A stretch of DNA of 64,000 nucleotides from Zygnema circumcarinatum SAG 698-1b (Eukaryota; Plantae; Zygnematophyceae): the NCBI GenBank assembly GCA_037447605.1, contig CM074805.1, forward strand, positions 2,699,361 to 2,763,360. Direction: 5' to 3'. Numbering within the stretch: the first letter of the stretch is position 1; each line of letters opens with the position of its first letter. The translations under genes and the position numbers were made by a program. The notes under the pieces were generated by a model. That model did no database searches. It saw only the letters and a list, made by a program, of their open reading frames with translations, and was not told where the DNA came from. Positions 40,905 through 48,525 of the stretch are shown here, in pieces.

Positions 40905-41165
40905 GACTGGGCGGGACTGGGCGGGACTGGGCGGGACTGGGCGGGACTGGGAGGGCCAAGGGCGCCTCCTTGTGATACATTTCAGGACACGGGCACAGGG
41001 GGGGCACAGGGGGGGCACATGGGGCACATGGGCACAGTGCATACGACAAGGGGAACAGGTTTCAGGGCACAGGGTGCACAAGGCAGAGGGCACAAGGCAA
41101 GGGGCACAAGGCACAAGGGGCACACAACGTACATGGCCCAAGGGGCATAGGGCACAAGGCACAGG
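40905..41165 (+). repeat. Short tandem repeats: (GACTGGGCGG)x4.6 followed by a degenerate GGCACA(A/G/T)G array
   Basis: 10-mer units at 40905-40950; repeated ggcaca cores from about 40990 to 41165. Confidence 0.85.
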
Positions 41166-41369
41166 GTGACTACAAAGGACGAGAGAGACACGTGCAAGGT
41201 CGCGGACACTCATCGCAGCGAGGGAGACAATCCATTTCCAATCCATTTCTTATTTTTCTTTTTCTTCAGAGGGGGAGGCTGAGAAGGAATGCAAAAAGCT
41301 TCAAAGCGGCTCTCTATTTCGGCTGAAGGGTTTACATGTCACAAGCAATCTATGGCGGCCGCGGCCCGT

Positions 41370-44300
41370 CTAGAGCAGCTCCCGGAGCGCGTTGTAGAGC
41401 AGCTGCGCCCACGTGTCCTCGGGCCCCGGCTGGCAGTAGTGCAGGCAGTCCGGCGCGCCCGCGTCGTTGGAGCCGCGGTGGCCGTCCACGCGGAGGCTGG
41501 TCGCGTTGTCCACGTCGAGGTACACGCCGCCGTACGCCTCCGCGACCCTCCGCGCGATCGCGTTCTGCGTGGCGAAGTCCGCCCAGTGGTACGCGCGCGG
41601 GAGGAGGGCCGCGGCCTGCCGCCGCGCCGCCGGCCGGGCGTGCTGCATGCACTGCACGTGGCCTGCCGCAGGGAGCAACGCGCAGGCTCACATAGATAAG
41701 CAGCAAGCAAACAAGTAATGCGCGATGGATTCATAGCTCAATGGATAAACAAATGACTAAGCAAACAATAAAACGAACATATAAATAGAGATATAACTCG
41801 TTCGAAATTGATAAGACTGATACACGTTTTTCTCTTTGTAAAAAAGCTTACCAGGAGGAGTGTTTCTCCAGAAGACGAGCGTGTCGGGGTGGTTCTTCCG
41901 AAGGTACTCGAACGTGTCCCGCACGCCCTTCTCAAAGACGGGGTCGTCGCAGAAGTGCGCCCCGCGGTTGAGGACGAGCACGGTCGGCCTCCACTTCTCC
42001 ATGAGCGTGACCCAGGGCGCCTCCCCGTCGAGCGGCACTCTGGTGAGGGAGACCGCGCGGTTGAAGCAGAAGCGCACGGTCACGGGCCGCGCCGCGAAGT
42101 GCTCGTGGCAGAAGGCCGTCCCGCGGCACGTGAACCGCCGCAGCCCGATGTCGTACTCCTTCCCCCCGTCCGGCACGACGTCCACAGGGGGATACTTTTC
42201 TGCACAATTCAAAGACTCGCTGGACAATTCAGGACACATTTAACGCATAATTTGATGGGGAGTTTATTCTATATCACTGCCAGGAAAGCTAGTAAAGAGT
42301 CCCTGTAGATAGGAGTCCATGGCGTGCAGCTTGCGATGCAGGATATGCGGAAATGGCAGGAGGCCCACCCAGATGGGTGGCTTCATACCTGTGTCGGAGC
42401 CCATGAGCAGATTGAAAAATATGTGGCGTTCAAAGCTGGAAGTCATGGAATCTCCCACCAGGAGGATGCTTCTTCCCGGGCCAGCGGCCCTGCGCCTCAA
42501 CAAGAATATGCATGTGAGATTGACGAAACGACTCGCTCATTACTGAATGTATGAGGGGAAAGTCCATGGTCCATGGTGCTACTCTGAGTGCTACAAACCT
42601 TGCAAAAAGAAACAGCATGCAGCCGATGTAATCGATCAGTCGAGCACTTCGAGCGTTGAAGCCACCTACTCACAGAATCCCTTTCGCGAAAACGGCTCGA
42701 GAGGGCACTGCGGTGTGCGCCACTCGTATTTGAGGTCCTCTCTCACACTCCAGTTCCCTCCCCTCTCCGCCACTGCGTCCGCCTCGGGTCCAAATATTCC
42801 TCCTCGCCACACCTGCCTCTGATCGCACCGCGAGATGATGCTGGGCAGTCCCCACGGCTTCAAAAGCCATGGAAGACGGCGGGGAGTCGGATTATAGACC
42901 CATTTTCCCGAAGTCATGAAGCATTCAATCTTTTTTCGCACCCTTTCCGCCGCTTTGGCAGTCTTCAATCTCGAACCCGGAATCGGAGATGGCAACCGGG
43001 GGGGTTGAAGCTGCGGGAGAGGTTGCCCCAATGGAGGCAGAGCTTCGCATGCTTTAACTCGCGTGCGTTCCTCGAGGGTCTGAACGTGCGCTCCGTTCAC
43101 GGTTGGAATCTGATCAAGATCCACTTTTGGAAGAGCAACTGCGAGCGTGTTGTAGAACAGATCCACCCACGCGTCAATAGGGCCCGGCCTGCACAGGCTG
43201 AAGCAGCCATCTGATTGGCCGGAAGCATTCAGCATTGCTGCAGGGCGCGACTTGATCGTGGGATCGACGTCCAAAAAGAGGCCCCCCATGTTTGCAATTG
43301 ATTTGGCCAATTTGTTTTGGCGCTCATAGTCAGAGTTCGGAAAGCGTTGGGGCTCAGGTGGCTGTGAGGCAGACTGAGGGTCCAAATCGGGACAGAACGT
43401 AGAGCCTGCATGAGCGGTAGCAGGAACGCATATTAAAACATTTTCTCGTCACCCTGCTGCCTCTCACAACTCTCACGTTTGTAGACGGGGTTGGTCTCCG
43501 CTAGATGAGTTGAAGGGGGAAGTGGACGAAGTTTTGAAGTGAAGGTGACTAGGAGGTGCACACGGCAAGAGATACAGCTTTGCAGCGAACTGTCTGACAG
43601 CAAATAAGAAGAAGCCTGTTTGTGCATAGACCTACACCTTCCTGAGCAAACTCCAGTAAACACTCTCTGGCAACCCTTTTTTCTCTATGAGCCCTCCTTG
43701 GAAATCAACAACAGAATTTCAGCCCAAATCCTTCCTTGCTCCATGACAAACATCATGGTAGACTGAACCCATACTAGTAACTTGCCCTCAAAACATGAAA
43801 ATGCTGCACAGAAACGTGAACGGCAGGTAGATTTCCTGCCCGCCCTCCCCCACACCAGCTGAAGCTACCAGCATTGCAGGGCCGCAGAATTGTACCTGTA
43901 GGCGTGCTGCGATATATGAAGAGCGTCTCCCGGTATCGCCCAGTGACCCAATGCGCCGCCGCCGCCAAGTTGGTGGTGAAGGTCTCATCGTCCACATCGT
44001 GAGCGGAGTGGCTCATGAGCACCACGGAGGGCCGCCAAAAGGACATGGCCGATATCCATGGCGTGTTCTGGAAGGCCTCCGTGTGGCGCGTGAGGGAGAG
44101 GTTACCGCTGCGAACAAAGCGCACTGCGACGGAGCGGCCGCCGAGCACATCGTGGCAGTAGCGGTAGCCGGAACACAGCTTGCGGTCGCGGCCCTTGTCC
44201 CATTCCAGGCACCCGTTTGGGAAGAGGTTCACTGGAAAGTAGTTTTCTGCAAGGCGGGGAGAGGAGGCTGGTGGGCTGAGAGGGAGAGGAGGGGGCAGAG

Positions 44301-46263
44301 GGGGGAAAGAGGAATTCGTGGGACTTTGTTGACTTTTTTTTACGGTTTACGAGGATGTGGAGTTGAGGTGTTTTCAAAAATTGAGAAAGTAGGCAACAGG
44401 AACAGTCTTGAGGAAAAGTGAGCCTGGAACCATGAGAGCTTTCTATGCAGAGTATGCTCGTGGAGGCAGATTACATGTGACTGCGAAGGGAGAAAATCCG
44501 GACAAAACATGAATGATATGATTGTGTCTATGACCCTGCAGTGCTAGTGCCACTGCCAATCAGAATGGCAAGGGGCGGTCTTCCTTTTCCTCCCGCCTTA
44601 GCACTCTCCTAGCTAGTTCTCTACTTCGAAAAGAAACCAAAAGGCTTCAATCATAAAAGCGCCCTCAAGGGACACTACAGAGCTCTAATAGCTCACCTTG
44701 ACATCCCCACTTGCTATGACTATGGCTGCATCCGCCTCCTCCTATAAAGCTTGAAAAGTTAGGATTGTCCAGAGGAACAAACCTATGCTACTGCGCCAGG
44801 ACTTTACGAAGGAATGTACCCTATATTGGGAATGTCTATGAAAACTATAGTGAAGAAGATTTATTCCCTCTTGTCTTAGGCTTCGTTGCATACTTCGTTT
44901 GCTGATAGCGAGTGAAGCCAACCCCACAACCCTAATCCCAACCCTAATCCCAATCAGGATCGTGAGCCCGCAGTACCCTGATGACCGGTCCCCTGAGCAG
45001 CGCAGCCCTTACCGGCGGCCCCCGCGAGCATGGCGTAGAAGAAGCGGCGCTCAAAGCCCCACGCGAGCTCGTCCCCAATGATGAGAACGCTCGCATTGGC
45101 GCCGAAAGAAGCGGACATGCGCCTGCCACGTGTCACACGCCCAGCCCCCCGTTCCATGCGCACACTATTGACTGTCGGCAATGGCGGACGGACAGACATA
45201 CATCTCATGGCATGGCATGGCATGGGATGGGATGGGGTTGATACTTTTGATCAACGAGCCGATTCCTCAATTTGAATTGAGGGGACTGAAGGCCTTAATT
45301 GTATAAAAAAGGCGATTTTTTGATATTCGCTGACAGGAAAACGAGCATTTTTGTTTTTCTGTTTTAAAGTTCATATGTCGACAATGTTCCTTTAGAGCGT
45401 GATCGCTAAAATGAAGCAAGCATAGAATGCAGCGATGTGGATTAGTTGACTGGAAGATGTCACGCATAAATCATTGCATTTAGTAACTGCAATCAGATTG
45501 TGGAAAAGATGTTATTTACGATGGCCGAGAATAGACAGGGTTTTACATGGAGTAAGATTTGGGAGGTGGTTTGAACCTTAGAGATTATGTCAAGTGGCGG
45601 ACAATAGCAACAGTTTACGAAAGAAATCCTCCTTACGGAATCTTACAAGGGTCCACGAATTCTACTTCTTGAATTTTTTTACAAAACAACAGAAAATGGG
45701 ACAGACCTCATACTGTAACAGTTAATGACTGAAAAAAAACAGAAATAGCTGTTCGAATTGCATATCAAAACACGTCGTAATTAGAAAAAGAAAAAATGAG
45801 CAGAGTTCTCATTCGATTTCCCGCAGTTTCCACGACTCCCCCTTCGACATGCAAGCATAGAATGGACCCACTTGCAAAATTTCTCGTAGCTGAACTCCTC
45901 CCATGGACAACGCTCCATCTCCCACCGCCACTTCACGTCCTCCCTCACCCGCCATGGCTGCCCCCTCTCTGCGGCGCCGTCCGCCTCCTCCCCCTCCGCC
46001 CACCCTCCCACCCCTCTCTCCCGATCGCACTGCGTCTCCCGTCCGTACGATTCCCTGATCCAGGCAACTTTCCTGGGTTTTGGGTTGTACGCCCATCTCC
46101 CCCTCTTGCTGAAGCATGTCAGCACCCCCCGCAGCATCGCGGCCCCGCCCTCCGTCTGCGCATCAGAGCCCTGAACGCCTCCCATGGCCCTCGCCAAAGA
46201 AGCCCACCAAGCAAGACACGTGACGATCAGGATGGCCTTATTCCTTAACCGCAACCTCGCCAT
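41370..46263 (-). CDS. TBL/PC-esterase (SGNH-like O-acyltransferase) protein with two tandem domains
   Basis: N-terminal TM/signal. Domain 1: C..RGRW.YNP...W.W...C...FC, IIGDE, W.P.V..., YRSTPTGH, DGCFSLCRPGP..AW..L.YN.L. Domain 2: C...GKW.YNP..., LVGDS, VLVLNRGAH, FWRNTPPG, DCLHYCQPGPEDTWAQLLYNAL*. The domain junction lies inside one open exon (42666-43385 ORF). Confidence 0.88.
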
Positions 46264-48034
46264 GGATGCGGAGAGGCTGCGCTCCGTGAGTGGGAAAGGG
46301 AGAGGGAGACGGAGAGGGAGAGGGAAAGGCAGCCGGAGTAGGCAGGAGCGCGCGGGGGGCCGGGCCGGGGACCAGGAGAGGGCAGCGGAGGGCTCTTGAG
46401 GGCGTCGCGGAGGGCGAATGGGAAAGCGCCACGTCGGATGGCTAGCGACAGTGTGATACATGGCAGTCCCCGATTGGTAGATCGGACAATGAGTGTCAAC
46501 GTGACGTAATCTGGCGTGCGGGTTTTGCGGGGAGCCCAGGTTGTGGAGGGTTGCGGTGGATCCACGCTTGCCTTGATGTGGATCCGCAGAGGTGGTGGTA
46601 GATCTAGCGTGGATACTGAGTTGATCCTCCAATAGCAGCCCGCAGATCCTGAACGAAATGTCGGTGGCAGGCGGCGGATGCACGACACGTGTCGAGGGCG
46701 GAGGGGGACCAATGGGCGTCCCCGGGGGACCGTTGACGGTTGGTTGACCGCTTCCTTTGGGAATTGGGACTCCCCGCGCTCCCTCCGCCGCCCGCCGCCC
46801 GCCGCCCTCCGTTTTGTCGCCACGTGCGTCACCACCGCGCGAGCGGCGTCCCGCCGCGGCGCCTCGCGCCCGCCGCCTGCCCGCCTGCTCGCTCGCTGCG
46901 AGCTCAGATCTGCACGGGTTTACGGTTCAGGGTCCCTCCCTCGCCACCGCCCGAGCCAGCCTTGCAGCGGAGCGAGCAGAGCGTCGTCTCGCCTTCCCCC
47001 AGTGAACGGTGAGCGGTGAGCCGGCGACGACGGCAAAAGCGCGATCGGTTTTTAGGGACGACGGCGGACTTGAGCAGCGGTGAGTCCTTGCCCTTGCCCC
47101 TGCCTCCCTTACCCTTGCCCCTGCCTCCCGTGCCCTTGCCTCTGCACCTGCCTCCCTTGCCCTTGCCTCTGCACCTGCCTTCCCTGCCCTTCCCCCTGCC
47201 TCCCTTTCCCTTGCCCCTGCCTCCTGTGCTCTTGCACCTGCCCCTGCCTCCCTCGCCTTTGCTCATGCCTCCCTTGTCTCCCTTGGTGCTCTTTTTGCTA
47301 CTGCTGCTGCTGCTGCTTTTTATGCTGCTGTTGTTGATGTTGCTCCTGCTTTTTAAGCTGCCGCTTTTTTTGCTTTTGTTTTTTTTGCTGCTGCTGCTGC
47401 CTCTTCTTCTTCTTCATCTGCTGTTTCTGCTATTGTTTTTGTGTTGTGCTGCTGCCGCTGCTACTGCTGTTGCTGCTGTTTCTGCTGCTACTGCTCTAGC
47501 TGCTGCCGCTTCTCATCCTGCTGCTGCTGTTGATGTTGCTGCTGTTTTTTTTGCTCTTGCTTTTTCTGCTCCTGCTGCTTCCTCCTTCTTCTTCATCTCC
47601 TATTTCTGCTGTTGTTGTTGTGCTGCTGCCGCTGCTTTTGCTGTTGCTGTTGTTTCTGCTGCTACTGCTGCAGCTCCAGCCGCTTCTTATCCTGCTGCTG
47701 CTGCTACAGCTCCTGCTGCTGCTGTTGATGTTGCTGCTGCTGTTGCTGATGTTGTTGCTGCTTTTTATGCTGCTGCTTTTTTTGCTCTTGCTTTTATGCT
47801 AATGCTGCTGTAGGTTTTGTTTTATTTGTATTGTTGCTTCATTCGTCATTCCGCATTCCGCATTCCACGTTCCGTATCTTACCTCCCTTGCCCTTGCCCC
47901 GACATCCTTTGCCTTTGCCCCTTGCTATGTTGCCTTTGCCTCAGTCTTCCCTTCCTTTGCTTGTGCCTCTCGTTCCTTTGCTTATGCTTTTGTTGCGTGT
48001 ATGACTGTGTGTTATTCCTCCCCCTCCCCATTAA

Positions 48035-48104: not shown

Positions 48105-48525
48105 CGTACTATTTTTTCATTTGTTTATTTTGATTCATATATAGTGTTTGTGTTTGTGCATTTGATGTAAAATATTTGTGGTTATTTATCTTAGTTGTTT
48201 TTTTTGTTTTTTGAGTTTCCTTCAAAATTTTGAATACCTTGTATACCATATTTTGTTTTGTGCTGCTGTTTCTGCTACTGTTGCTGCTGCTGCTGTTGAT
48301 GCTGCTGCAGCTTTTTGTGGTGTTTCTTTTTCTGCTTTTGCTATTTCTGCTGCAACAGCACCTGCTGCAGCTGTTGATGTTGCTGCTGCAAATTATGCTG
48401 CTGCTTTTTTTGCTCTTGCTTTTTCTGCTGCTGCTGCCTCTTCTTCTTCTTCTTTTGCTGCCCGTTCCTTTGCCTATGCTTGTGTTGTGTATGATTGCAT
48501 GTTATTCCTCTCCCTTCCCCATTAT

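Follow-up and report, generated by a model that had tools for sequence, protein, structure and literature searches.

A TBL-like gene of Zygnema circumcarinatum joins a domain lacking the catalytic Ser and His to a domain that retains the triad motifs

Background

Trichome birefringence-like (TBL) acetyltransferases influence plant cell wall properties. The question of how these enzymes select and pattern their substrates is still open in the field (PMC11360243), and the natural, conserved joining of a live TBL-like domain to a dead twin provides a direct handle on substrate choice and patterning. Here we describe such a fusion in the alga Zygnema circumcarinatum SAG 698-1b, in a window of 64,000 nucleotides (64 kb; assembly GCA_037447605.1, contig CM074805.1, forward-strand positions 2,699,361 to 2,763,360) whose own numbering is used throughout. 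A seven-exon minus-strand gene at 41370-46263 encodes two homologous TBL/PC-esterase-like halves that are 34-38% identical, referred to below as domain 1 (N-terminal) and domain 2 (C-terminal). The locus had been singled out from its sequence alone as a dead domain fused to an active one (the original prediction).

The Arabidopsis xylan 2-O-acetyltransferase XOAT1 (ESKIMO1/TBL29, structure 6CCI) uses a Ser216-His465-Asp462 triad and an acetyl-Ser intermediate, and Cys463 and Cys467 form disulfides into its minor lobe (bioRxiv 10.1101/2020.01.16.909127). Its Arg219 belongs to the oxyanion hole, being needed for transfer and thought to limit hydrolysis (bioRxiv 10.1101/2020.01.16.909127). Like XOAT1, domain 2 of the window protein carries GDS followed by DCxH(Y/W)CxPG in the same order, the Cys pair of the latter block is found in both domains, and both domains take the two-lobed fold of XOAT1 in models of relatives. 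XOAT1 however has one domain only and a type II anchor, while the window protein has two domains, the first without the triad, and an apparent signal peptide; domain 2 also lacks the Arg, and the sequence similarity is marginal.

Single-domain TBLs of Klebsormidium acetylate pectin, and TBLs of both Klebsormidium and Marchantia are O-acetyltransferases (PMC11360243). These pectin and mannan O-acetyltransferases (KnPOAT1/2, MpPOATs and MOATs) belong to the same superfamily and are described as single-domain proteins (PMC11360243). Likened to the window gene by description, they offer domain 2 its best functional precedent. A 2018 review noted that algae seem to lack TBL29-like proteins (PMC6110886). 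The named relatives recovered in the present searches were also single-domain, namely hypothetical proteins of Closterium spp. and R1flu_015298 of the liverwort Riccia fluitans, for which UniRef gives 'Trichome birefringence-like C-terminal'. These share CxxxxGxWxxxxxPRxLPW, GDS, NRGAH and DCLHYCxPGP with domain 2 but have one domain with an intact triad and no module of the domain 1 type.

AlgX, which functions in alginate acetylation, combines an acetyl-transfer SGNH-like domain with a non-catalytic carbohydrate-binding module thought to hold the polymer. It has been named as a TBL equivalent (PMC11360243), but its partner module has an unrelated fold and it resides in the bacterial periplasm, whereas the window protein pairs the enzyme with its own dead paralogue.

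Results and discussion

Gene structure and homology of the two halves

Translation of the exons places the start codon as an ATG ending at 46263 and the stop codon at 41370-41372. The exon lengths total 2331 nucleotides, or 777 codons including the stop, with homology-set splice sites, and the frame closes by this coordinate arithmetic. All six introns read GT...CAG, the exon 1 donor being the GT at 45871-45870 in phase 2, and the GC content at third codon positions (GC3) of the exons was 0.60-1.00 compared to an intron GC content of 0.38-0.49. The acceptors of exon 2 (AG 45124-45123) and exon 5 (AG 42491-42490) were set by homology, the former to the two-domain relative P0003 described below. 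An AG at 45205-45204 was the first choice for exon 2 and was dropped after the P0003 alignment. All searches used single exons or natural relatives as queries, the spliced protein being known only by its coordinates.

Each half of the gene contains three introns with phases 2, 1 and 1, at positions that match between the halves, and two pairs of acceptors are also alike in sequence (gcag/aaaac with gcag/aaaag and tgcag/gc with ggcag/gc). Homology was detected for exon 1 with the C-terminal part of exon 4 (38% identity, E 4e-25), exon 2 with exon 5 (38%, E 3e-08), exon 3 with exon 6 (34%, E 1e-24), and the N-terminal part of exon 4 with exon 7 (37%, E 4e-13). A tblastn search of the 64-kb window with the exons gave no third copy of the domain, leaving two copies only.

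The original prediction cited four motifs, GDE and DGCFSLC in domain 1 and GDS and DCLH in domain 2, and all of these translate at the coordinates that it had assigned (Table 1). The catalytic triad motifs (GDS and DxxH) are present in domain 2, and the Ser and His are missing from domain 1. DGCFSLC had been taken as standing in for DCxHWC, and the block is indeed degenerate. The change in question is nevertheless one of His to Ser, and on alignment of D-G-C-F-S-L-C with D-C-L-H-Y-C the Asp pairs only when a one-residue insertion is allowed. The claim that a dead N-terminal TBL-like domain is fused to an intact one in a single gene is thereby supported, as is the homology of the halves.

Domain 2 reads GDSMTSSFER and has no Arg three residues past the Ser (TBL block II, RNQxxS); in the alignment to 6cci a Val faces Arg219 of XOAT1. 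Domain 2 of the relatives is also without an Arg at this position, with the sequences GDSLNVG, GDSLTLG and GDSINMS. The LNRGAH block was considered as possible evidence for an oxyanion hole of the hydrolase type, a reading that was dropped because the block seems to correspond to the FNxGHWW block of canonical TBLs.

The two domains meet within exon 4, which consists of the last ~90 residues of domain 1, a Pro-rich linker and the first ~105 residues of domain 2. Its open frame (42672-43403) runs for 244 codons with no stop across the domain junction.

Relatives with two domains

An exhaustive HMMER search with exon 4 against 1.84 billion cluster representatives returned 116 matches. Nine representatives (P0003-P0010 and P0012, 543-1151 residues) were two-domain proteins, having either two full domains or truncated forms of such an arrangement, and several of these aligned across the domain junction in one stretch. 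Eight of the nine are open reading frames (ORFs) of Trinity transcripts from EukProt. P0003 was found on three Logan contigs of ~3 kb from the runs SRR8128903, SRR8128907 and SRR8128908, where its ORF is uninterrupted and extends upstream into a signal peptide. It is collinear with all seven window exons at 38-63% identity, with exon 1 matching P0003 residues 1-82 in a tblastn alignment and exon 3 being 48% identical to P0003 domain 1. P0003 comes from another species since its GC3 is 0.37 compared to 0.6-1.0 in the window gene. A word-based protein search with exon 4 recovered only two short single-domain N-terminal fragments (P0001 and P0002), owing to the length window of that search.

A search for the same architecture in related genomes had been proposed as a check on the original prediction, and the nine relatives were the outcome. 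The window gene is consequently a member of an old and conserved two-domain subfamily instead of a species-specific oddity. It had also been allowed that the architecture might already be a common, described subfamily. The subfamily is conserved, as noted, and no published description of it was found in the literature searched: tandem or dead-plus-live TBLs are not described in the founding PC-esterase paper (PMC2824669) or in reviews of wall O-acetylation (PMC6110886, PMC11360243), and further full-text literature searches returned nothing relevant.

Conservation of domain 1

A profile hidden Markov model (HMM) was built from single-domain members and all domains were aligned to it. Where covered, domain 2 of the two-domain proteins retained GDS, the NxGAH block and DCLH(Y/W/F)CxPG. 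In domain 1 the GDS block reads GDE, GGDH, GGEH, GNEL or GGDV, RGAH is absent, and the DxxH block reads xC(I/V)(N/D/S)xC. In domain 1 of the nine relatives, the site of the nucleophile Ser is occupied by D, E, D, E, E, E, E, D and E, and in that of the window protein by E. The His position is N, D or S in the relatives and S in the window protein, and both Cys residues of the block are invariant. Domain 1 of the window protein would be unable to form an acyl-enzyme because its Ser is replaced by Glu and its His by Ser.

Among the nine relatives, domain 1 had a mean pairwise identity of 37%, compared to 45% in domain 2 and 18% in the linker. These values indicate that domain 1 is under purifying selection. 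A second HMM, specific to domain 1, scored 400-520 bits on domain 1 of the two-domain proteins, as against only 80-240 bits for their second domain or for single-domain proteins. The translated window exons were scored with both models (Table 1), and the window gene follows the pattern of a subfamily combining a pseudo-TBL with a TBL, having a module of the domain 1 type ahead of one of the domain 2 type in a single ORF, in the same order as its relatives. As judged from these alignments, domain 1 is a retained scaffold without the triad chemistry. Some longer relatives (830-980 residues) were considered as carriers of a more decayed domain 1 and rejected, the domain-1 HMM being silent in their N-terminal regions.

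Table 1. Exons, motifs and other segments of the two-domain gene, with bit scores of the exon translations against the two profile HMMs
Feature	Coordinates	Strand	Content	Domain-1 HMM (bits)	Single-domain HMM (bits)
Exon 1	45872..46263	-	Start codon, signal peptide or anchor, Cys-rich N-lobe of domain 1 (CFSKRGRWAYNPKPR...FC)	104	65
Exon 2	45013..45122	-	Domain-1 block I; GDE where GDS is expected	43.7	8.0
Exon 3	43896..44246	-	Domain-1 core; MSHSAH in place of the LNRGAH block	110	69
Exon 4	42670..43405	-	End of domain 1, linker and start of domain 2 in one open frame		
Exon 4, N-terminal part				58	45
Exon 4, C-terminal part				86.5	94
Exon 5	42389..42489	-	Domain-2 block I with GDS	10	17
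Exon 6	41852..42199	-	Domain-2 core with LNRGAH block	52	77
Exon 7	41370..41662	-	C-terminal part of domain 2 with DCLHYCQPGP, then stop	52	128
Hydrophobic segment	46192..46236	-	AILIVTCLAWWASLA, then ARA-MG; Kyte-Doolittle 15-residue maximum 2.07		
GDE	45068..45076	-	Glu where domain 1 should have the nucleophile Ser		
DGCFSLC	43191..43211	-	Degenerate DxxH block of domain 1; Ser for His, both Cys retained		
Inter-domain linker	42924..43142	-	~70 residues, Pro-rich, ends in IPGSRLKT		
GDS	42447..42455	-	Predicted nucleophile Ser of domain 2		
DCLH	41439..41450	-	Predicted catalytic Asp and His of domain 2		

The acidic residue at the Ser position raises the alternative that domain 1 has acquired a new chemistry, or a cation-dependent binding function, centred on the invariant Asp or Glu. 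Such a residue is found in 10 of 10 members, the Cys residues of the cleft disulfide are invariant together with many residues specific to domain 1, and the domain evolves only slightly faster than domain 2. The flanking positions are nevertheless variable (GDE, GGDH, GGEH and GNEL), the change of the His position between N, D and S leaves no common partner residue, and no known SGNH-fold enzyme with a carboxylate at the nucleophile position turned up in the present work. This alternative is regarded as very unlikely.

Family assignment and predicted fold

The Pfam PC-Esterase model (PF13839) matched exon 7 with 42 bits (E 1.4e-10) against a gathering cut-off of 27. Domain 1 was not recognized by this model, with the domain-1 part of exon 4 at 12.7 bits (E 0.12) and no match for exons 1-3. 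The two-domain relatives likewise gave a single match of 36-59 bits, always in the last ~100 residues and with no second match. An HMM scan had been expected to yield two PC-Esterase matches, an expectation that failed for the exons and the relatives alike, each having only one partial match. The architecture was revealed by the purpose-built domain HMMs instead. Since Pfam is blind to domain 1, that domain is tied to the PC-esterase family only via its homology to domain 2 and its fold. The PMR5N model (PF14416) gave no match at E values up to 10 on the exons and up to 0.1 on the nine relatives, although there is a Cys-rich N-lobe with C-x4-G-x-W, which superposes on the minor lobe of XOAT1 in the models of relatives. 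By sequence, the window gene belongs to a remote branch of the TBL/PC-esterase superfamily, made up of algal and bryophyte members, and not to a canonical TBL group. The algal relatives of land plants thus hold TBL-like architectures that are invisible to domain databases, and Pfam-based surveys will undercount and mis-describe the two-domain family because only ~100 of the ~776 residues are detected.

Structure prediction, which had been suggested as a further check, was carried out on relatives and returned the XOAT1 fold for both domains. An AlphaFold2 model of P0004 from a 33-row alignment had a mean predicted local distance difference test score (pLDDT) of 86 and a predicted template modelling score (pTM) of 0.86, with the same order of secondary-structure elements in both halves and low pLDDT at residues 400-430. 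Domain 2 of this model aligned to XOAT1 (6cci_A) with Z 26.3 and a root-mean-square deviation (rmsd) of 2.8 Å over 279 residues. A model of domain 1 alone was made for P0003, the closest relative of the window domain 1 (pLDDT 75, pTM 0.80), and aligned to 6cci_A over both lobes with Z 19.6 and rmsd 3.7 Å for 259 residues. The next entries for P0003 domain 1 were generic SGNH esterases at Z 12.5 and below. By sequence the only solved relative was 6cci (phmmer E 1.8e-4), through the motif blocks only. The pTM of the P0004 model suggests that the two domains may be held in a fixed mutual arrangement.

Evolutionary history

A maximum-likelihood tree of 58 domain rows was midpoint-rooted, with only the exon 3 and exon 6 fragments standing for the window gene. 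All the domain-1 rows formed one clade with support of 99 in the Shimodaira-Hasegawa-like approximate likelihood ratio test (SH-aLRT), and all the domain-2 rows formed another (SH-aLRT 96). Exon 3 of the window gene fell inside the former and exon 6 inside the latter. Three rows labeled as single-domain lay within the domain-2 clade, and these were short isoforms or N-terminally truncated two-domain proteins. The branching orders of the two clades agreed by eye on the drawn tree, and with midpoint rooting the single-domain Closterium and Riccia members were the neighbouring group to the domain-2 clade. This topology fits one old duplication and fusion, after which the two domains would have descended jointly.

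A separate clade of the same algal PC-esterase family (P0011, P0013, P0014, P0029, P0030 and P0046) has lost the Ser and/or the His, with GDA, GDQ, GDH, GDI or GDE accompanied by DCYYYC, DCWSYC, DCYFYC, DCMRYC or DCWRYC. Some of these domains are single, some lie within multi-domain proteins of 1300-2600 residues, and some are in tandem. P0011, P0013 and P0014 were placed outside both the domain-1 and the domain-2 clades, and their loss of the triad was therefore probably an independent event. Triad loss seems, from these motifs, to be recurrent in the algal PC-esterase family, and pairings of dead and live TBL-like domains seem to have arisen more than once in streptophyte algae. If this is true, such pairing is possibly a general and undescribed way in which these algae pattern wall acetylation.

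The statement that TBLs are normally single-domain also needs to be qualified as other exceptions exist in the databases. In P0107 (1283 residues) the canonical TBL motifs (GDSLNRN or GDSISKN, and DCSHWCLPG) occur in two or more domains arranged in tandem, with possibly a third, weaker one among them. This is a genuine multi-TBL protein or else an artefact of gene models that were fused.

Integrity of the fusion and the N-terminus

A single tblastn high-scoring segment pair spans the domain junction (P0003 residues 261-514), with its final ten residues lying beyond the exon 4 donor and crossing a stop. The original prediction held that the fusion was no gene-model artefact, and the transcript-derived relatives and the uninterrupted Logan contigs, which hold both domains in one ORF, agree with this. 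The linker has no hydrophobic segment (Kyte-Doolittle maximum 0.67), and domain 2 alone would for that reason have no route into the secretory pathway. At the N-terminus a basic stretch precedes the 15-residue hydrophobic segment (Table 1) and the relatives begin alike; this segment probably serves as a cleavable signal peptide. The single-domain fragments P0001 and P0002 carry IPGTRHKT...C...GKWVYNPTPR directly after an N-terminal hydrophobic segment, while the window counterpart IPGSRLKT follows the linker.

It is conceivable, if highly improbable, that each half is a gene or product of its own, whether by way of an internal promoter, of alternative polyadenylation or of proteolysis in the linker, with fusion at the DNA level only in the window species. 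No transcript of the window gene was found, and its long, Pro-rich linker could be cleaved after secretion, being poorly conserved among the relatives (18% identity) and of low pLDDT (400-430) in the P0004 model. Set against this, the junction has no stop, there is neither an in-frame Met with a signal peptide nor a hydrophobic segment ahead of domain 2, and the transcripts of relatives have both domains in one ORF. The domains also seem to have diverged in step, and the pTM of 0.86 is suggestive of a fixed arrangement.

Predicted function

On balance we consider it probable, with some reserve, that the gene encodes a secretory two-domain XOAT1-like protein of ~776 residues in which an active O-acetylating C-terminal domain is accompanied by a pseudoenzyme as N-terminal partner. 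Domain 2, with its GDS and DCLH, would be the working module and would transfer acetyl groups via an acetyl-Ser intermediate. The substrate would most likely be a wall or mucilage polysaccharide, as for the characterised charophyte and bryophyte TBLs. Domain 1 is most likely a non-catalytic partner, a role that we infer, and would hold or position the polymer, or a partner, beside domain 2 via its retained cleft. A more specific proposal is that domain 1 has been re-purposed and is no relic. Its cleft, with the invariant disulfide Cys residues and with the invariant Asp or Glu at the former nucleophile site, may bind the polymer, perhaps through a cation, and would serve as a built-in ruler that determines how widely spaced or how processive the acetylation by domain 2 is. 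This proposal is put forward as speculative and unlikely.

Several observations weigh against the favoured assignment. Domain 2 is without the Arg that XOAT1 needs for transfer, and the N-terminus resembles a signal peptide that is cleaved off more than it does the type II anchor of a Golgi protein. A purely structural role of domain 1 does not explain why an acidic residue invariably occupies its nucleophile site, which leaves room for a new function of that domain. The structures are models of relatives and not of the window protein, and no transcript or annotated protein of the window gene was found in the protein collections (searches with exon 4 and P0003 as queries).

Two of these observations, the signal-peptide-like N-terminus and the missing Arg, leave an esterase role open. 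The main rival to the acetyltransferase assignment is therefore that domain 2 is a secreted polysaccharide acetyl-esterase of the wall or mucilage, with domain 1 as a lectin-like targeting module, and this is thought to be somewhat unlikely. The N-termini of the window protein and its relatives resemble cleavable signal peptides and have no cytosolic tail. The equivalent of Arg219 is missing from domain 2. The PC-esterase family was originally predicted to consist of esterases (PMC2824669), and plant TBL38 is reported to have acetylesterase activity in the wall (PMC11043868). Every charophyte or bryophyte TBL assayed so far is however a transferase (PMC11360243), and XOAT1 itself has both activities in vitro.

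Composition and repeats at the locus

GC3 climbs along the latter part of the gene, where exons 4 and 5 have 0.60-0.64, exon 6 has 0.92 and exon 7 reaches 1.00, with values of 0.78-0.83 in exons 1-3. A telomere-like short repeat, CAACCCTAATCC in 2.2 copies on the plus strand (GGATTAGGGTTG on the gene strand), is located within intron 2 at 44927-44953. Just past the stop codon, the region 40905-41166 contains the GC-rich minisatellites GACTGGGCGG (5 copies), GGGCACAGGGG (3 copies) and GGCACAGGGGCACAA (6.6 copies). A GAGAGG/CT-rich repeat at 46288-46338 lies directly 5' of the start codon in the presumed 5' untranslated region or promoter. Further upstream of the gene are long imperfect TGC/CTG-rich and CCTTGCCC-type repeats (47086-47800 and 48257-48435), which give rise to long low-complexity ORFs on both strands.

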